Below are positions 941-61,759 of a stretch of 64,000 bases of DNA, in pieces. Within the stretch, counting starts at the first letter, position 1. Each line of letters opens with the position of its first letter. The position numbers and the translations under genes were made by a program. The notes beneath the pieces are model-generated. The model ran no database searches and had not been told where the DNA came from. It worked only from the letters and a program-made list of their open reading frames with translations. Location: positions 1-64,000 of the forward strand of contig NIVC01001014.1 of assembly GCA_002269645.1 (NCBI GenBank). The letters run 5' to 3'. This DNA is from Macrostomum lignano. Lineage: Eukaryota.

Positions 941-15023
<14,083 letters not shown>

Positions 15024-35954: not shown

Positions 35955-38011
35955 TTAACAGTCACCAGAAGACTGAGACGAAGTCTGCAACATTGCTTTC
36001 AACTTGGCATTCTCAATTTCAAGCAGTTCCACTTGCCGCTGCATATCTTGCACTTTAGTTAACAGCTGACTTGATTCTTCAGCTAAATGTACGTTTTGTA
36101 TCTGCAATTTGCCGAAATAATCCACCGCCTTGTTTAATACGGCACTTTTTGGCAGGCAGAGCCAAGGCGCTTGCTGCTGATCAAGCTGTTGTTGCTGATG
36201 CTGCTGCTGTAACTGAAGCTCCTGGTCTTGCTCTGAGTCCATTGTTAGAGCCTGCTGGCTGTCCGGAGAAGCCGAGGTTGCAGCGGCGGCTGCTGCTGCG
36301 TGGCCGCTCCATTCCTGAGCTGGCATCATCTCGGCCAGCTGGTTGATCAGCGTGTTGATCTTGTCACGGCGCCGCCGCTCCACCTGTGACACAGCGGCGA
36401 TTTTAAGGCCATTCTTAGAAAGGCGAATCCTATAGGGATGATTCTTAGAAAGGCGAATCCCACAGGGATGATTCTTAGAAAGGCGAATCCTACAGGGATG
36501 GTTCTTAGAAAGGCGAATCCTACAGAGATGGTTCTGAGAAAGGCGAATCCTACGGGGGAATTTCTGAGAAAGGCGATTCCTACGGGGGAATTTCTGAGAA
36601 AGGCGAATCCTACGGGGGAATTTCTGAAGAGGCGAATGCTACAGGGATAATTCTTAGAAAGGCGAGTCCTACAGGTGCGATTCTTAGAAAAGTAAACCCT
36701 ACAGGTGCGATTCTTTGAAAAGCGAATCCTACAGAGACGATTCTTAGAAAGGCGAATCCTATAGGGATGATTCTTAGAAAGGCGAATCCTACAGGGATGG
36801 TTCTTAGAAAGGCGAATCCTACAGAGATGGTTCTGAGAAAGGCGAATCCTACGGGGGAATTTCTGAGAAAGGCGAATCCTACGGGGGAATTTCTGAGATA
36901 GGCGAATCCTACGGGGGAATTTCTGAGAAAGGCGAATCCTACCGCGGAATTTCTGAGAAAGGCGAATCCTACGGGGGAATTTCTGAGAAAGGCGAATCCT
37001 ACGGGGGAATTTCTGAAGAGGCGAATGCTACAGGGATAATTCTTAGAAAGGCGAGTCCTACAGGTGCGATTCTTAGAAAAGTAAACCCTACAGGTGCGAT
37101 TCTTTGAAAAGCGAATCCTACAGAGACGATTCTTAGAAAAGCGAATCCTGCAGAGACGATTCTTAGAAAGGCGAATCCTACACAGCTGATTCTTAGAAAG
37201 ACGAGTCCTACAGAGGGGATTTTCAGAAAAGCGAATCCTACAGGGGTGATTCTTAGAAAAGGCTAATCTTACACTGGGCGACCCTTAGAAAGGCGAATCC
37301 TACAGGGTGATCATTTTAATGCGAGATTAGAAGACAAATATTACAGGACAATAAAAAATGCAATTCTCGCGAGAATTGACCTTCAGGCTACATCAGTTAC
37401 AGGGATTAAAGGGCCAAATGTTGATCAAAAAGGTTGCATTTAATTTTTACCTCATTATGACTTGATTTTCTACGCTTCTCCCGATCGCAGCAAGCCGACA
37501 GCTGTCCATTAGCTGCACTGCCGTTGACATTTCCAACAACAGAAGCAATGACTGGTCCGCCGCCGCCACCGCTGCTGCTGCTATTGCTATTGCTGTTGCT
37601 GCCAACAAGTCGATCTGAATCCAACAGAAAGTTCTGCTGCTGTTGAGAGTGAGACGGTCTGCCACTGCCGCCACTATAAGGTCGAGGTCGTTTAACAGCA
37701 TGCTGTTGATGATGATTGGCATCTATGGAATTCAGAGCGGCATTAGATTGCAATTGATAAGCGGCAATGTGTGAAGTAGTGGCTACAGAGGCAGTGGCAG
37801 CGGCAGAGCCAGCAGTAGTAGTAACGGAGCTGCTGGGCGTCACCATTATATAGATGTCACCGTTTGTGCCTTGCACCAACTGGCCAGTTGTTATGCTGGC
37901 AAGACTGCCTGCTGGGCCAATAGGCTGCGGCTGCTGCTGTTGCTGACCAGCTGATGATGAAGCTTCCAATGCGGCTCTCCAGCTTCCATTGGTGCCAATT
38001 CCGGGCCGCAT
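35955..38011 (-). CDS. USF-like bHLH-leucine zipper transcription factor
   Basis: Exons 37451-38011 and 35955-36383 join as REKRRKSSHNE|VERRRRDKIN..I.QL..M..KSAVLNKAVDYF..L..N..L, followed by a zipper (LEIENAKLKAML). This is a USF-family basic region. Confidence 0.85.
36410..37310. repeat. 27-bp minisatellite, USF intron
   Basis: Unit ttcttagaaaggcgaatcctacaggga-like, with an internal ~360-bp block duplication. Confidence 0.95.
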
Positions 38012-38171
38012 AGCGATGCAGTTATCAGAAATTTGAAGAATATTTCAGAAGGTTGACATTTTACCGAAATATAGAAAATATAAAACGGCTGAACCTGGTT
38101 CTGAAGCATCTGAAAAACTGAAACTAAAAAAACTAAGTTGCTGGGATGGGCCTAATGGGAAAGTGAGATAA

Positions 38172-39185
38172 GAGCTTATAGAATATGGGAAGGTGAGATT
38201 GGAGCTTACAGATTATGGGAAGGTGAGATTGGAGCTTACAGATTATGGGAAGGTGAGATTGGAGCTTACAGATTATGGGAAGGTGAGATTGGAGCTTACA
38301 GAATATGGGAAAGTGAGATGGGAGCTTACAGATTATGGGAACGTGAGATGGGAGCTTACAGAATATGGGAAAGTGAGATTGGAGCTTACAGAATATGGGA
38401 AGGTGAGATTGGAGCTTACAGAATATGGCAAAGTGAGATTGGAGCTTACAGAATATGGCAAAGTGAGATTGGAGCTTACAGAATATGGGAAACTGAGATG
38501 GGAGCTTACAGAATATGGGAAAGTGAGATTGGAGCTTACAGGATTTGGGAAAGTGAGATTGGAGCTTACAGGATATGGGAAAGTGAGATTGGAGCTTACA
38601 GGATATGGCAAACTGAGATTGGAGCTTACAGAATATGGGAAACTGAGATTGGAGCTTACAGGATATGGGAAAGTGAGATCGGAGCTTACAGAATATGGGA
38701 GTCTGAAAAAGTGATTGGGGTGTGATAAAGGAGAGTGGGAAAGTGATTATGGGCGTGGTAAAGGAGAGTGGGAAAGTGATTATGGGTGTGGTAGACTGTG
38801 GGAAAGTGATTATGGGTGTGGTAGACTGTGGGAAAGTGATTATGGGTGTGGTAAAGGAGTGTGGGAAAGTGATTATGGGTGTGGAAAGAGAGTGTGGGAA
38901 AGTGATTATGGGTGTGGTAAAGGAGTGTTGGAAAGTGATTATGGGTGTGGTAAAGGAGTGTGGAAAGTGATTATGGGTGTGGAAAGAGAGTGTGGGAAAG
39001 TGATTATGGGTGTGGTAAAGGAGTGTGGGAAAGTGATTATGGGTGTGGTAAAGGAGCGTGGGAAAGTGATTATGGGTGTAGTAAAGGAGTGTGGGAAAGT
39101 GATTATGGGTGTGGTAAAGAAGTGTGGGAAAGTGATTAGGGGTGTGGTAAAGGAGTGTGGGAAATTTATTATAGGTGTGGTAAAG
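38172..39185. repeat. 30-bp (38172-38700) and 29-bp (38710-39185) minisatellites
   Basis: Units gggaaagtgagattggagcttacagaatat and gggaaagtgattatgggtgtggtaaaggagtgt-like, sharing a gggaaagtga core. Confidence 0.95.
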
Positions 39186-39838: not shown

Positions 39839-42800
39839 TCAGGACGAGGCGCACTGCACTCGCTGACCGCCGCCAGCTCCGTCTTCATCGTCGGAGTCTG
39901 CGCCGCCGGCTGCGGCCCGCATGAAGCCGCCGCGACCGCCTGCGGGTGAGTTTAGGTTAATAGTTTAATATTAACGACTTAAATAGGAAATAATATGATT
40001 ATTAGGAATTATAAATAGTTAAAAAACAATGTTCAAAATTAGATTGCGACACGCCGTGCATAAAAAATCTTACTTTGGAAAACATCTCTGTATAAATTTG
40101 GATAGTATGGTTGGCTGTGCTTTTTGGGTGAAGGCGGTCGAGTGTACATCAAGGGACGGGGTTTGGGGGTGAAGGCGGTCTAATTAATGTACATTAAGAG
40201 ATGGGGTTTTTGGGAGTGAAGGTGGTCTAATGTACATTGAGGGACGGGGTTTTGGAGTGAAGGCGGTGGAGTGTACATTGAGGGACGGGGTTTTGGGTGA
40301 AGGTGGTCGAGTGTGCATTGAGGGACGGTTTTGAGTGAAGGCGGTCGAGTGTACATTGAGGGACGGGGTTTTGGGTGAAGATGGTCGAGTGTACATTGAG
40401 GGACGGGGTTTTGGGGGTGAAGGCGGTCGAGTGTACATTGAGGGACGGGTTTTGGGGTGAAGGCGGTCGAGTGTACATTGAGGGACGGGGTTTTGGGGTG
40501 AAGGCGGTCGAGTGTACATTAAGGGACGGGGTTTTGGGGGTGAAGGCGGTCGAGTGTACATTGAGGAAAGACTTAGGGGGAAGAGATTGAATTGTAATTA
40601 GTTGAATAACGACCGCTGCCAAATTTCTTTAGACAAAGAGGCAAAGAAAGACACTGCTTTATTAATAATCAACTACTAACTAATGCTGCTCAGTGTGCAG
40701 CGTAGAAATATATTGTCTAAAAAAGAATAAATCTAATAGTCAGACAGTTGATAAGAGCAAGCTGATTAATAAGCGGCATTAAGCGTATGGTTAGGTAAGA
40801 AACTACATAAGGTATAATATCAAATCAGACAGATTTAGTTACCAAACTGGCTCCTCATTCTCTCTAAAATGTTTGAGGAGCACGGGGTATTGTGAAGAAA
40901 GAGATTTAAATTCAAAGGCGAGGGTCGAGTTCAAAAATACAAAGTGCATTATGTATTATATAATCTAAAACACTAAAGCAAGCGATATAAAATTTGCACA
41001 GTTGTATATACTCTTAGTAAATTTGTTTGCTTGGTTAGTAACAAATTATTAATTGGCGAATGTTTGCGGAGAAATTAATCGATTTACTACCGATATGTTT
41101 TGTAAGACACTTTTATTGAACTCTCATTGGATTTAAAAGCTTGTAAAGCAATAATAAATTAATATTACAGATAATTTTATAGCTTAAACATGCCATGTAC
41201 ATCTGCGTAGAGACCTAATCGAAATTCGATCTAATATACCGATATGTTGCGTAATAAACTTTTCCATTAGAAAACTTACCGTCTCTCTGCTGCCTGGCAT
41301 CCATTTCAGGGTCGAATTCGGTCATGACAGTCTCCTCAGCATCGTCGGGAACGATGACTTCCTGTCCTGGCGGAAGCAGTTTGCGCAGCTGCTTCAACTC
41401 TTTCTCGCTGAGGAAACCGGTTGGCGGGAACTCCACAGTGAAATGTATTATAAGGCGGCCCTTCTCGAACGGATTCTTATAAGTTGGCATGCCCTCGTGT
41501 TCGACAGTTTTATAGGAGCCGTGGCGAATCACTTCGCCAGGTCGCGACTCAATTAGCAGGCTGCGCTGATCCAGGGTGCCAATGACGCGTTTGAATCCGG
41601 TCAGCGACTCGTTCAGATTGATGGTGAGCTTCAAGATGAGGTCGCGACTCCGACGAATGAAGGTCTCGTGCTCGCGCTCCTCTAGCACGATGACGATATC
41701 CCCGGGCTCGAGTTCGGGATCTTGATCGCCTTCGCCGGTGAAACGAATCTGCTGGCCATCCTTCATGCCTTTGTCGATGTTTACTTCGAGTATCTTCTTC
41801 TCGCGATTTACCTGCAATTTTGAGATGTCAAGGGGATTTTTTAATCTCAGATTGTACGCCTACTGATTAGCAGTAGTATATCGCAACACAAACATTACTA
41901 ACCTTTCGTCCTTCGCACTTCTTGCAACGATCCTTGGCATTGATCACTTCGCCTTGGCCCTGGCAGTTGCGACAAACAGTCTGGATCTGCTGCACCATGC
42001 CAGGAGCCAGCTGGCGAAGGTGCACCTCCATGCCAGAGCCGCGACAGTTCGAGCAGGCCTGAACAGCGCCGGCTTTGCCGCCCCGACCTTCGCATTTGTC
42101 GCAGACGACATTCTTTTGCACGGCTAATTTCCTAGTGGCGCCGTTGTACAACTCCTCCAGGGTGACGCCTAGCTGGTGGACAACGTCTTTACCGCGTCGG
42201 GGACCGCGCGAACGGCCGCCGCCGCCGAAGAACATGTCGAATATGTCCATGGGATTGTGGAAGCTGAAGCCTTCGCCCGGCGTGCCCTCCTTCAGGGCCT
42301 GAAGTTGGAGGGGTAGGGAGAGAGTGAAGAGAGTGCATTGTGGGTGAGTGAAGCCAGCGGGTAAAATGAGCACGCGAAATTATAATTTCATGCGAAATAG
42401 CAACTTCGGCGTGCAAATGGGGGAAATCATAAGGCACTTCATATTATAGCATGGGATAAATGAAGGGAGATGGGAATGGGATCAGTGATGGTGGGGAGAG
42501 GGGAATGGGATAAATGATGATGGGGAGAGGGGAATGGGATAAATGATGACGGGGAGAGGGGAATGGGATAAATGATGACGGGGAGAGGGGAATGGGATAA
42601 ATCATGACGGGGAGAGGGGAATGGGATCAATGATGACGGGGAGAGGGGAATGGGATAAATTATGACGGGGAGAGGGGAATGGGATAAATGATGACGGGGA
42701 GAGGGGAATGGGATAAATCATGACGGGGAGAGGGGAATGGGATAAATGATGACGGGGAGAGGGGAATGGGATCAGTGATGATGGGTAGAGCTGGGAATGG

Positions 42801-43213
42801 GATGATGATGGGAGAGGGGAATGGGATAAATGATGATGGGAGGGGAATGGGATCAATGATGAAGGGAGAGGGGAATGGGATAAATGATGATGGGAGGGGA
42901 ATGGGATAAATGATGATAATGGGATGGGGCAAAAGGGGAAAGGGAAAAAACGGGAAGTGGAACATAAAAAAGCAGAAGCTAATAGCAGAAAGCAAAGTCT
43001 CACCTGCTCGCCACCCTCATCATAGATCTTCCTCTTCTTAGGATCGGATAGCACTTCAAACGCCATGGCAATCTCCTTGAACTTGTCGCCAGCCTCCGGA
43101 TTCTTGTCCGGATGATATTTCAATGCCAATTTTCTGTAAGCCTTCTTGAGCTCCTGCTCAGAAGCGTTCGGGGTCACGCCTAGCAAATCGTAGAACTTTG
43201 TTTCCTTAACCAT
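39839..43213 (-). CDS. DNAJA1: DnaJ/Hsp40 subfamily A member (DNAJA1-like)
   Basis: Exons 43004-43213 (J domain with HPD), 41903-42298 (G/F region, CxxCxGxG repeats), 41280-41811 (C-terminal domain), 39839-39939 ([32 protein letters not shown], CaaX box). All phases are consistent. Confidence 0.96.
40118..40565. repeat. ~40-bp minisatellite, last DNAJA1 intron
   Basis: Unit gaaggcggtcgagtgtacattgagggacggggttttggggt. Confidence 0.93.
42450..42925. repeat. ~30-bp purine-rich minisatellite, DNAJA1 intron
   Basis: Unit gggagaggggaatgggataaatgatgacg. Confidence 0.93.
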
Positions 43214-45522
43214 TGCTGCTGCCTTTAACTGTAAGATTAATATATAAATAAATAAATTGTAGTATTCACGGTCTCTTTCTGCGAAGATTTGTTTAAATCA
43301 CAGAGATGGAAGCTTGCAGAGATGCCTGGACTATAAGTGTAGTTAATAAAGCAAGTAGCTTTAAAGCTGAAAAATAAAGCAATTTTATGGGTAGGATAGA
43401 ATTGTGATGTACTTTTGCTTATATCTAGAAATTTTGTCATAAAATAAAGTTCAAATTTAATTCTATCAGTTTGACTAAATTATGTTTGTTTGGTATTTAG
43501 AAAAAATATTAATAAACGACTACACACTTAAAGATAACTCAAATTCAGCAATTGATAGAATTATGAAATGTTAAGAATGTGTATACTTCTAATGAAATAA
43601 AATATTTATTATTGCTTGATGGTAATAAGGCCTATTATTAGCCAAAGTGTCATTTAATCCAAATTGGAATCAATAGTAAAATAATAGATTTATTGACAGA
43701 TAACTATATAGTAGAGGTCTATAGATGCTTATTTACTATTTTGGGTCTTGCTTGCCCTCACTAGGCCCTACAGATAAGTAGTTTTTTAAAGATTTACCAG
43801 GTCAGCACTAAATGGTTAGCAGTTCTATTCTTAAAGAAAGTGCATTTAAACAAAGGCTTTAGGTTTAGAACTGTATATAGACCTCTACTTTATGTTTAAT
43901 CAAAGCCTTAGTGCCTTTACAAGTGCAGAATAACCAAAAAATTACCCAATAAAATGTTTACCTGATTAAAAAGTTTCTATGTAAACATTTTGATAGGATT
44001 TTATTTTACTAATACAGAACTATATATATTGCAGATAATATACTCAATGATATAATTTTCCCACATACATGAGCCCCTTGTTTTGTTTTTTTTGTGTGCA
44101 TATTTATATAAAAATTAATATGCCTACAACACTTGAGATTATGCTTGGCATATACCAAATTGTGCATAGAATTTAGAACTAGAATTTTTTGGAAACTTAG
44201 GTCTAAAATTTGTTAGTAATTAATAATGAGAACAGTACTAAAAACACTAGTATTAACTAATGATCTACATAGTTGAATATGTTGACTATCAACTAAATTC
44301 ATACGTGTGCAACTGCCCTGATTTATATCACAGATACTAGAATAACTAGATAGGCCACTCAACATATTTATATATAAACTTTCAGTTTAGTAGCAAGTCA
44401 AACAGAAGCGTTTCAATATACTTTTAAATTCAAGGCTTATCTAGCCAAAACCTTCCAATTGCTACTTCTATACTACCCCCACCCCAATTTTTATTGCCTT
44501 TCTTAGAATTATAGCCTAAAGCTACCATGTAAATTTCAATTTCTGGCTAATATACATTAGTGCTAAACCAATTAATAAGTTATTTAAACCTGCAAGCTTG
44601 GGCTTTTAAAGTTATTAAAGTCATTTCAGTTGCCTTTTTTATAAAATAGCTTATGCATTATTTTTTGCTACTGAACTAAGAATAGAAACTTGTTTTGATA
44701 AGTAGATTTACCTAAATAGCCCATCTAGTTATTTTAGAATCTGTGATTTACATTGGCCATGCAACTTTTTTGACCAAAAATGAGACTAAAGTAAGAAAAA
44801 CTAAAGCAAAATTTAATGTTATTTTAAGTAAACAATAAGGATAACTATGACTGTCTTTTAAAGCTAAATGCTTTACCATCTAATTAATACTGTCTATATT
44901 TTTGGGTGGTCATTTTTGCAATTTTTGCAACTTACCCTGGGTCTTAGCTGGGCCCTCACTAGCTAGCAGAATTAGCTAGATAAGCTAGGTGCTGTTCATA
45001 TATGACTACATTTAACATTTAAACCAAGACATCAATTATTATTTTGTTTTAGATAAACTAGTTTTTGTCATACATCTTACATTCACAATATAGCATGTCT
45101 TCAAAAAGTTTTATTTTTTGCTTAAAAAATTAAAAGGATGCTTAACATTATAATGAAAAATAGTAAACTGCTTGTTGGCTAAATTAATAGAACTTATAAG
45201 ATTATAAGATAAACATACAAACAAACAAATAACATGTTAGTTTTAATATTAGGAGAGACAGCTTATGGAAGTTGGTCATTTACCCTATTATAATTAATAA
45301 AATCAGATAAATAGCATATGATTAAACTACTTATTAGCTGATAAGGCAACTAACTCAATCATAATTATTCCTATTTACCTATTTGCCCCCTAGATTAATG
45401 ATGGTTTATACACAAAGTGTATTATGCTTGGTGCACAACAGCATATCTATAGACTAAGAATTTATTCCAATAGGGCTGTACTATAGATCACATTTTTTAT
45501 TTGATAAGAAGCATTTAGCTAA

Positions 45523-50142: not shown

Positions 50143-50771
50143 TTTGGCACTTCACAATATTTTTACACTTTCTATATTGAATGCAATCTTGTTTAGGCCT
50201 AACTATTCTCAAATGCAGGGCCCATTCTTCAAAGTTTGAGAATTTCTTGAAATGACCCAAAAAAAGGCCAAGTCCCAAAATTTTGCGATTGAGATTGAGA
50301 TCTCAGTCAGACTTCACTATGCTTACACACAGTTTGAAATTTCATTGAAATTGTTCACGCAGAGTCAGGGATTTGTCATCACAACATCAGAGATAAGATT
50401 TCCACTTGGAGTTTTGTTAAAAATTGTTAGGCCCCCTCACACACTAGGCCTAGGGCCTACACATTAAATAAAGCACATTGTGGTGTGCATTCTCATTTTA
50501 ATGGGTAATTTTTTGGTCCATCTGCACTTGACTTGTGTAGAAGCATCGGAATGCTGAATAACTTTTAGTGCGTCCAATAACGCACTTCAGTTCAAGTCTA
50601 AAAAATAGGCCTAGTAATAATAGGCCTAGGCCTATCGCCTATGCTATGTAATTGTATGGCTATTTTACTAATTAGGCCTATATTTTATAATAAAGATTGA
50701 GGTAGAAGTCGAGTCATGAAAAAAAACGATAAAAAGTAAGCAATTACAATAAAAAAACAATTGACACTTAC

Positions 50772-50830
50772 CTTACTGGACAGTGACGTTGAAAGACGTG
50801 TTTAGCCCAAGCCCACAAGAGTAATTGGGA
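50772..50830 (-). other. Putative non-coding first exon of DNAJA1 (upper boundary uncertain)
   Basis: Consensus donor AAG|GTAAGT at 50772. Matching acceptor ttaatcttacag| at 43229, 15 nt before the ATG. HSE just upstream. Confidence 0.55.
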
Positions 50831-50863
50831 AAGTGAAAAAGTATAAAAATAAGGCCGTTTGTC

Positions 50864-50878
50864 CTTCTAGAAATTTCT
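50864..50878. promoter_or_regulatory. Heat shock element (three alternating nGAAn units)
   Basis: cTTCt-aGAAa-tTTCt is a perfect HSE, about 90 bp upstream of a (-) strand donor that points to an Hsp40 gene. Confidence 0.6.

Positions 50879-54461: not shown

Positions 54462-61759
<7,298 letters not shown>

Follow-up and report, generated by a model that had tools for sequence, protein, structure and literature searches.

Hairpins near the cap restrict 43S loading, as with Kozak-type stems and with the ferritin IRE, whose effect depends on its position. Pairing can also tether the partners of trans-splicing, both in engineered SMaRT pre-trans-splicing molecules that carry an intron-binding domain and in C. 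elegans eri-6/7, and the trypanosomatid SLA1, an H/ACA-like RNA, pairs with the spliced leader (SL) and guides its pseudouridylation. Wallace et al. are said to have found in 2010 that the nematode SL stem-loop helps eIF4E/G use TMG-capped mRNAs. SL-exon sequence is also found outside SL RNA genes, near the 5′ ends of genes, as the relict SLs of retroposed trans-spliced mRNAs in dinoflagellates and at Mlig013257.g1 of the flatworm Macrostomum lignano, where an SL sequence is encoded at the gene's 5′ end (PMC8629364). Here we describe an antisense counterpart close upstream of the M. lignano Hsp40 gene DNAJA1, probably within its leader; a literature search for antisense-SL elements found no description of one.

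The window that we analyzed is a 64-kb stretch (64,000 nucleotides) of contig NIVC01001014.1 (GCA_002269645.1). DNAJA1 lies on its minus strand, with the ATG at 43213–43211 and coding exon 1, which encodes the J domain, at 43003–43213 (from ATG 43213 as far as the donor GAGCAG|gtgaga). Its protein product matches M. lignano PAA73377.1 (Mlig009083g1), from the same contig, at 100% identity. Exact look-ups of the DNAJA1 protein matched genome contigs only, a search with the N-terminal 144 aa gave no M. lignano fragments, and the gene id Mlig009083 was not found in the paper texts in which we looked for it. At 43268–43287 the plus strand reads ACGGTCTCTTTCTGCGAAGA, which matches nt 9–28 of the published M. 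lignano SL at 19 of 20 positions (CCGTAAAGACGGTCTCTTACTGCGAAGACTCAATTTATTGCATG, as printed in PMC5173321; a 35-nt version is given in PMC8629364). The minus-strand RNA, UCUUCGCAGAAAGAGACCGU, is complementary to SL nt 9–28 with one A.A mismatch. A preliminary description of this DNA had named the species and its SL sequence and claimed 19/20 complementarity between this SL and the DNAJA1 pre-mRNA; the protein identity confirms the species, and the printed sequence the other two points. The alignment is confined to SL nt 9–28, the flanks being at chance level. No other site in the window lies within three mismatches of the SL core (0.01 expected from shuffles), and elsewhere in the window local alignments to the SL do no better than shuffles. 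For the 764-Mb genome, both strands included, our own arithmetic gives about 0.1 matches of 19/20 expected by chance.

Compared with the relict SLs, the DNAJA1 element is likewise SL-exon sequence outside an SL RNA gene and close to a gene 5′ end; relict SLs also lack the SL RNA intron moiety, and only SL-exon similarity is detectable here. It differs in being antisense to its host gene, so that the transcript carries the SL complement, in having no visible plus-strand retrocopy body, ORF or poly(A), and in being common to more than one species and not recent. A relict SL of a retroposed mRNA would be in sense immediately ahead of the mature leader of its host gene, and this is not the case here, the SL-like strand being plus whereas DNAJA1 is on the minus strand. 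The search for a retrocopy body found no plus-strand ORF of at least 50 aa within 2.4 kb of the element, and within the window we found neither multi-copy transposable-element protein ORFs nor a second copy of the element region (as a repeat or transposable element). An old, fully decayed retrocopy body is possible.

The plus strand could also be read as a decayed SL RNA gene, as a retropseudogene, or as a snoRNA-like guide RNA that targets the SL. It does bear the sense SL core, together with a AATTTTATGG motif and a weak likeness to the second hairpin region of the SL RNA about 100 nt downstream, and the guide-like segment is flanked by GUGAU and UGAA strings. However, beyond the element the plus strand continues as TTTGTTTAAATCACAGAGATGGAAG, with no GTAAG donor in register. 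We rejected an SL RNA gene of the M. lignano type (109 nt): the full SL exon (35–44 nt) and the donor are absent and the two-hairpin/Sm-like intron moiety is unmatched. For comparison, a genuine SL RNA gene was recovered from a metagenome contig (L007, 616–720); alignment of its intron moiety gave P values of 0.33, 0.07, 0.78, and 0.97 against the window, the M. lignano homeolog L003, and the transcripts L005 and L002 of two related species, respectively. A C/D or H/ACA guide RNA was rejected both by eye, since neither a D box (no CUGA before the acceptor) nor a terminal stem or H/ACA hairpin is present, and by Rfam, where no family passed the gathering threshold or E<1 except for a single chance hit. 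The DNAJA1 segment shares with SLA1 an extended SL-exon complementarity in a natural RNA, but it probably lies in an mRNA leader rather than in a small RNA and has neither the architecture of a guide RNA nor an Rfam match. With the segment also sitting in the mRNA 5′UTR in relatives (below), we consider an SL RNA gene derivative or guide RNA very improbable, in agreement with the preliminary description, which had noted the mismatched flanks and missing donor and concluded that the site is not an SL RNA gene.

We found the anti-SL element in 3/3 M. lignano copies of the locus. In L003 a single C-to-U change falls inside the 20-mer and keeps a G.U pair; this substitution, which hits a CpG, matches the background rate and so does not mark the pairing as specifically constrained. 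The L005/L006 transcripts are from another species, whose protein is 95% identical to that of M. lignano and whose third codon positions match at 43/70 (61%). They begin with the 3′ end of the SL and have a 5′UTR of 160 nt, which aligns with the antisense SL at 25/30 positions with 4 indels (shuffle P 0.0015) at a site homologous to the M. lignano core, and in the comparison of M. lignano with L005 the core ranks among the best-conserved UTR pieces. A more distant species is represented by the L002 transcript, which is SL-capped as well; it has kept the flanks TTGAATTCT and ACCTTGTTTA, which are not significant alone, and has lost the core. In both relatives the homologous segment is exonic rather than intronic, being downstream of the SL acceptor and within the 5′UTR of mature SL-capped DNAJA1 mRNA. 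The next-best DNAJA1 transcripts, from the marine metatranscriptomes P0003 and P0004, have unrelated leaders and no Macrostomum SL. These comparisons establish what the element is by sequence, that it is old, and that it is exonic in the relatives, and the element withstands one of the refuting conditions set in the preliminary description, since the homeologs have it and one related species has it in decayed form.

The pattern of decay differs by lineage: M. lignano lacks the flanks, L005 has 3 to 4 indels in the core, and L002 lacks the core. An antisense SL-exon copy would predate the divergence of M. lignano from at least one of these relatives, and probably from both, with each lineage keeping a different part of it. 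SL pairing is not kept across species, being interrupted by indels in L005 and almost gone in L002. At ACC[G]T both relatives carry T, while the base in M. lignano is complementary to the SL; this suggests that M. lignano changed towards complementarity. The half-site UCGCAGA, which is conserved, has a possible local partner as well in a conserved UCUGUGA 20 nt upstream, and such pairing could account for part of the conservation without the SL. Chance resemblance would be helped by an AT-rich, low-complexity region and by a partly self-complementary SL core (GTCT..AGAC), but the expected match counts oppose it, as does the independent, significant match to the antisense SL that another species has in the homologous place, and we regard a chance origin as effectively refuted.

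Two candidate 3′ splice sites on the minus strand fit the published [T/C]TNCAG motif. The first, cttacag| (43229–43235; exon start 43228), is 15 nt before the ATG, is conserved in 3/3 M. lignano copies and would place the terminal AUG of the SL in frame (ATG|TTAAAGGCAGCAGCA ATG). The second, tttttcag| (43367–43374; exon start 43366), would be an upstream SL acceptor giving a 153-nt 5′UTR that includes the anti-SL core, compared with 160 and 118 nt in the relatives. The 54 nt upstream of it are identical in L003, and a further copy, L004, has TG in place of its AG (..TTTTTATG|C). Between 43214 and 43420 on the minus strand, M. lignano differs from L003 at 2 positions in 207 nt, against about 7 to 10 per 100 nt, or about 9%, further upstream, and this block is contained in an ATG-free run of 227 nt preceding the start codon, a length that just 2.5% of positions attain across the 10 kb upstream. 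The near-invariant block and the ATG-free run favor 43366 over 43228 as the acceptor and suggest that the M. lignano leader is exonic up to about 43366–43420. The anti-SL segment would then probably be inside the mature SL-capped mRNA via tttttcag|43366, as we infer from these sequence features. If 43228 were the sole acceptor used, the element would be outronic and a stem within one mRNA would never form; the conserved, in-frame cttacag| and the AG missing from L004 argue in this direction, against a leader stem.

Tentatively, and at somewhat less than an even chance, we favor the interpretation that the DNAJA1 5′ leader contains an old antisense SL-exon copy, probably exonic and stem-forming, with the 20-mer as its best-preserved core. 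With the segment part of the mature SL-capped mRNA, its most direct physical consequence would lie within one molecule: after trans-splicing, SL nt 9–28 would fold back onto 5′UTR nt 80–99, forming a stem of 19 bp, with its start 8 nt from the cap and a loop of about 94 nt inside it. Transcripts of the relatives carry the SL end and the homologous segment, that is, both arms, on the same mature mRNA. The SL and UTR pair in silico, with predicted duplex energies of −37.5 kcal/mol for M. lignano, −35.4 for L003, −28.2 for L005 (P 0.004), and −19.0 for L002 (not significant). A cap-proximal stability of about −30 kcal/mol or stronger is thus predicted for M. lignano and L003, while L005 lies just short of it and L002 does not reach it. 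When the SL and UTR were folded together, the stem was kept in both the minimum-energy fold and the centroid (z-scores −2.4 and −3.4).

One would expect so strong a stem close to the cap to dampen cap-dependent initiation in the SL-capped isoform. Like Kozak-type stems, the predicted DNAJA1 stem is strong (about −37 kcal/mol) and close to the cap; unlike them, it would gain one arm by trans-splicing, so that it would exist in the SL isoform only, and it is predicted to be weaker or absent in relatives. As in nematodes, the SL sequence would join a 5′ structure; the nematode stem, which affects translation, is a short and local one common to SL mRNAs in general, whereas the DNAJA1 stem would be long-range, gene-specific, and probably inhibitory. 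A perfect heat-shock element (HSE; GAAATTTCTAGAA on the gene strand), the sole perfect one in the window, lies at 50865–50877 on the minus strand and is followed by a TATA-like box and by the donor of a putative non-coding upstream exon (50766–50772, minus strand; G|GTAAGT within AG|GTAAGT, exon end 50772), which is kept in L003. The HSE, the TATA-like box, and the donor are all conserved in the homeolog. An mRNA from the HSE promoter, cis-spliced from exon 50772, would escape the damping because it lacks the SL arm. We infer this effect on translation from the predicted fold, and a strong cap-near stem is not usual in heat-shock mRNAs, which counts against a leader stem.

A further step would be that the element is a selected, gene-specific sensor of the origin of the DNAJA1 5′ end, acting either as a brake within the mRNA or in trans on acceptor choice; we think this unlikely, although less so than the trans pairing considered next taken by itself. 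As a brake, only SL-capped mRNAs would fold the 19-bp stem and be poorly translated, while HSE-driven cis-spliced mRNAs would escape. In the trans version, SL RNA would steer acceptor choice by pairing beside the branch site that serves the 43229 acceptor.

The preliminary description had instead placed the 20-mer in an intron, about 40–60 nt upstream of the acceptor, where pairing with the SL RNA could tether or decoy the SL snRNP and so switch between cis- and trans-splicing. In the form that we considered, the element would be outronic or intronic, 38 nt upstream of the 43229 acceptor, and would pair in trans with the SL RNA and set SL trans-splicing versus cis-splicing from the HSE exon, by tethering the SL snRNP to the acceptor or by blocking the branch-point/U2-anchoring region. 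Several observations are compatible with this. The cttacag| string is where it was described, with a motif fit, conservation, and reading frame that suit a candidate acceptor; the HSE, TATA-like box, and donor are real and conserved; and a TACTAC branch-point-like motif directly adjoins the element on its 3′ side. When DNAJA1 RNA was cofolded with the genuine L007 SL RNA, opening stem-loop I, the net gain was −13.2 kcal/mol, compared with a mean of −3.6 for scrambled cores, and a tether or decoy of SL RNA by the 20-mer is thus thermodynamically possible. As with a SMaRT molecule, the 19/20 pairs would link an RNA that carries the donor to a stretch a short way upstream of one candidate 3′ splice site. 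Unlike in SMaRT, the SL exon itself would do the binding, and stem-loop I of the SL RNA buries it: nearly all of nt 10–25 is paired there, with an unpaired probability near 0. In nematode trans-splicing in vitro the SL exon sequence is dispensable, and no case from nature in which an SL exon pairs with a specific target is known to us. The homologous segment is moreover exonic in two relatives, downstream of the SL junction, so a role in trans-splicing cannot be ancestral. With a second candidate acceptor lying upstream of the element, the intronic placement is doubtful, and we consider control of splicing by pairing in trans distinctly improbable.

A functionless relic deserves more weight. 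An SL-bearing cDNA end or SL fragment may have been inserted antisense into the DNAJA1 leader long ago and now be decaying, the M. lignano core being a chance survivor within a leader constrained for other reasons, for example splice signals or UTR functions. The progressive, lineage-specific decay fits this account, as does the background rate of the homeolog difference within the 20-mer, and the M. lignano protein-coding locus Mlig013257.g1 offers another case of an embedded SL sequence (PMC8629364). Because the element was picked for its good match, its apparent conservation is also inflated. Against a relic, 19/20 positions kept in M. lignano are hard to reconcile with a split that leaves 61% of third codon positions matching; the core is conserved relative to the rest of the UTR in the comparison with L005; the base at ACC[G]T is SL-complementary in M. 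lignano and not in the relatives; and constraint covers the whole leader. We judge a functionless relic quite possible, if short of probable, and about equally likely. An old antisense SL-exon copy, probably exonic and stem-forming, is nevertheless the interpretation that we prefer.

The same SL is added to about 30% of M. lignano genes (PMC8629364), and the role of the SL for monocistronic genes is still debated. If the element acts as proposed, an mRNA that bears the complement of its own SL would be a simple and testable way to treat SL-capped and non-SL isoforms differently, here in a chaperone gene with a heat-shock promoter and in a flatworm amenable to transgenesis. The sensor, if true, would be the first natural mRNA to read its spliced leader via base pairing. 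If the element is only a relic, it documents the capture of an antisense SL into a gene leader. As this case cautions, not all SL-like k-mers in flatworm genomes are SL RNA genes.

The + strand of the window at 43268–43287 reads ACGGTCTCTTTCTGCGAAGA, which is identical at 19 of 20 positions to nucleotides 9–28 of the Macrostomum lignano spliced leader (SL core) and lies antisense to the SL in RNA from DNAJA1, a minus-strand gene. The SL given in the preliminary description is printed verbatim in PMC5173321 (a 35-nt form is in PMC8629364), and comparison with the published sequence returned the same 19/20 complementarity that had been claimed. The species was also correctly named: the exons assembled on the minus strand encode a DnaJ A-type protein 100% identical to M. 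lignano PAA73377.1 (Mlig009083g1), which is located on scaffold NIVC01001014.1 of GCA_002269645.1. All three points, the match, SL sequence, and species, are solid. Apart from the 20-mer, no site in the window comes within three mismatches of the SL core (shuffle expectation 0.01), the other local alignments between the window and the 44-nt SL do not rise above shuffle level, and by our own arithmetic ∼0.1 chance 19/20 matches are expected genome-wide (764 Mb). Given these window and genome expectations, chance is not a serious explanation.

Nor is the element an SL RNA gene, in agreement with the preliminary description. An Rfam search at the 20-mer found no family, the region has no second copy in the window, and no + strand ORF was found adjoining it. 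When metagenomes were scanned for the SL 3′ end joined to GTAAG, one contig was recovered (L007, Ga0302322_100095745), which carries at 616–720 a complete SL RNA gene, CCGTAAAG...TTGCATG/GTAAGACACCGGTGATCCAATTCTGGATCAGTATTTTTAGCAGCCCTTTCATGGGCTTCC (slashes mark splice sites), with an SL 44/44 identical to that of M. lignano, a GTAAG donor, two 3′ hairpins, and a AGUAUUUUUAG Sm-like site; its RNA folds into three canonical stem-loops. Because L007 comes from an environmental sample, this SL is common to M. lignano and an uncultured relative. Neither in M. lignano nor in the relatives does the sequence adjoining the 20-mer resemble the L007 intron moiety significantly (P 0.33, 0.07, 0.78, and 0.97). 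With this result and the empty Rfam search, we reject an SL RNA gene and conclude firmly that the 20-mer is neither that nor a chance match.

At the DNA level, the locus is as previously described, with a cttacag string (ending at 43229, minus strand) 15 nt upstream of the DNAJA1 ATG (43213, minus) and an HSE-linked upstream exon. The upstream block (50766–50877, minus) contains the sole perfect heat-shock element in the window (HSE, 50865–50877), ∼7.6 kb from DNAJA1 on its upstream side; a TATA-like box comes next, then a putative short noncoding exon that ends at 50772 with the donor AG/GTAAGT. L003, a further M. lignano copy of the locus, has a homologous block at 6392–6580, conserved far better than its surroundings and only ∼3.5 kb upstream of DNAJA1. 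The long upstream interval in the window is flanked at both ends by a common TAGGCCTATTATTA motif on opposite strands (43627–43640, plus; 50615–50628, minus), in GGCCTA-rich patches, and this pair may have been left behind by an inverted-repeat transposable element. Large minisatellite arrays (42451–42916, 40121–40566, 38155–39185, and 36411–37311; periods of 29, 40–41, 30, 33, and 30 nt; 11–30 copies) occupy DNAJA1 intron 1, the DNAJA1 last intron or 3′ region, and the neighboring HLH gene region. Both strands of the GC-rich stretch at 54687–58848 (up to 57% GC) contain long, overlapping ORFs, and Pfam gives weak hits to collagen repeats there; the stretch is probably a collagen-like gene of low complexity.

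Three Logan transcript contigs that encode close orthologues (L005, L006, and L002) bear on the age and placement of the element. L005/L006 must come from another species because their protein is 95% identical to that of M. lignano with 43/70 third codon positions identical; L002 is more distant (92% and 31/70). All three start with the 3′ part of an M. lignano-type SL (..CTGCGAAGACTCAATTTATTGCATG), followed by 160 nt (L005/L006) or 118 nt (L002) of 5′UTR homologous to M. lignano ∼43366–43214. In these relatives, the segment is part of the mature mRNA, 3′ of the SL junction, and its exonic place there is solid. At the position of the 20-mer, L005 aligns to antisense SL nucleotides 11–41 over 30 nt with 25 matches and 4 indels (shuffle P 0.0015; L005 TTGAATTCTCTCGCAG-AAG-GACCTTGTTTA, antisense SL TTG-AGTCT-TCGCAGTAAGAGACCGTCTTTA). 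L002 retains the flanks only, TTGAATTCT and ACCTTGTTTA, which we read as remnants solely through homology to L005 because L002 alone does not match the antisense SL significantly (P 0.57). By the homologous match in L005, the DNAJA1 leader of a common ancestor therefore already contained most of the SL exon as an antisense copy: the sequence comparison argues firmly that the 20-mer predates the divergence of the L005 species from M. lignano, and the copy was probably present in the ancestor of all three. M. lignano has since kept the center and lost the flanks, partly by a 13-nt deletion; in the L005 species the flanks and some of the center survive, and in the L002 species the flanks.

The published motif for trans-splice acceptors, [T/C]TNCAG (PMC8629364), is matched at two M. 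lignano sites: tttttcag/ (exon from 43366) and cttacag/ (exon from 43228). Counting for 43366, L003 is identical over the 54 nt that precede the site, a length that fits a branch point plus polypyrimidine tract, and begins to diverge just beyond that stretch; an ATG-free run as long as the 227 nt before the start codon occurs at only 2.5% of positions across the 10 kb upstream; and use of this site gives a 153-nt UTR, in line with the relatives' lengths. Counting for 43228, the site is present in 3/3 M. lignano copies, its junction puts the SL terminal AUG in frame with the ORF (ATG/TTAAAGGCAGCAGCA ATG), and L004, another copy, reads TTTTTATG/C where the window has TTTTTCAG/C at 43366 (L004 1262–1266, window 43365–43369: ..TTTTTATG/CTTTAAAGC versus ..TTTTTCAG/CTTTAAAGC). 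The two adjacent L004 changes create an ATG precisely at the would-be SL (..GCATG) junction and abolish the AG, which looks like short cDNA-templated conversion or an assembly error. The relatives' acceptors have no counterparts at the same positions in M. lignano, so acceptors have turned over. Judged by these features, M. lignano probably uses 43366, and both acceptors may be used.

If 43366 is used, mature DNAJA1 mRNA would bear both the SL and its complement. RNAduplex energies for SL:UTR pairing (kcal/mol) were –37.5 in M. lignano, –35.4 in L003, –28.2 in L005 (P 0.004), and –19.0, a nonsignificant value, in L002. The SL:element stem is present in the minimum-energy structure and the centroid of full SL + UTR folds (M. 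lignano –46.3 kcal/mol, z –2.4; L005 –50.4, z –3.4). The two leader blocks best conserved between M. lignano and L005, CUCUGUGAU and UCGCAGAA (43301–43309 and 43276–43284, minus), can make a local 7-bp hairpin (UCUGUGA/UCGCAGA) that would compete with SL pairing. At L005 200–217, the first DNAJA1 codons (GUUAAAGAGAC; GUUAAGGAAAC in M. lignano) pair with SL nucleotides 12–18 (GUCUCUU) in the predicted minimum-energy fold.

The preliminary description had taken the 20-mer as intronic and proposed that it could pair in trans with SL RNA as a tether or decoy. When L007 SL RNA was cofolded with DNAJA1 pre-mRNA (43340 to 43214), SL nucleotides 10–25 were almost wholly paired in stem-loop I along with the donor, and the heteroduplex had a net gain of –13.2 kcal/mol (scrambled cores, –3.6 mean and –9.0 best), making trans pairing thermodynamically possible in the model. 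Such a duplex would sit directly 5′ of a TACTAC branch-point-like motif. The region directly 5′ of the branch point anchors U2, so inhibition would be at least as likely as tethering. We rank action in trans third and consider it unlikely.

A functionless relic is a tentative reading that comes a close second to the same-mRNA stem. It would account for the indels in L005, loss in L002, and background-rate substitution in L003, and the 20-mer was picked for its good match, an ascertainment bias. Modest points for selection are that few UTR pieces are as well conserved between M. lignano and L005 as the core, that 19/20 is retained despite substantial divergence, and that one site has the SL-complementary base in M. 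lignano and in neither relative; the predicted local hairpin could explain part of this conservation. Among the homeologs, to which the preliminary description had looked for conservation, the 20-mer is identical in L004 and has one further change in L003 (..CTGCAAAGA), which in the mRNA reads as C to U at a CpG and would retain a G·U pair with the SL. Over the proximal 1.4 kb, identity between the window and L003 is 92.8%, with the differences very unevenly spread: just two at 43214–43420 (43363 and 43283, the latter within the 20-mer), and ∼7–10 per 100 nt beyond 43420. The leader thus hardly differs between these copies, and the near-identity over 207 nt suggests either constraint or a recent gene conversion that took in the coding exon as well; the 20-mer is no better conserved than the neighboring leader.

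No description of anti-SL elements was found in the searchable literature. The element resembles the relict SLs of retroposed mRNAs, but it is antisense and no retrocopy body is visible beside it; it could function as the binding domain does in engineered trans-splicing RNAs, and it is built differently from SLA1 or a snoRNA. It could also act as a cap-proximal inhibitory hairpin does, except that here one arm comes by trans-splicing. The reading we place first, without granting it even odds, is that an old antisense-SL segment persists in the DNAJA1 leader with an SL:5′UTR stem within one mRNA as its most direct consequence. The predicted M. lignano stem starts 8 nt from the cap, where a stem of this kind should hinder 43S loading, and a cis-spliced mRNA from the HSE promoter would be without the SL arm.
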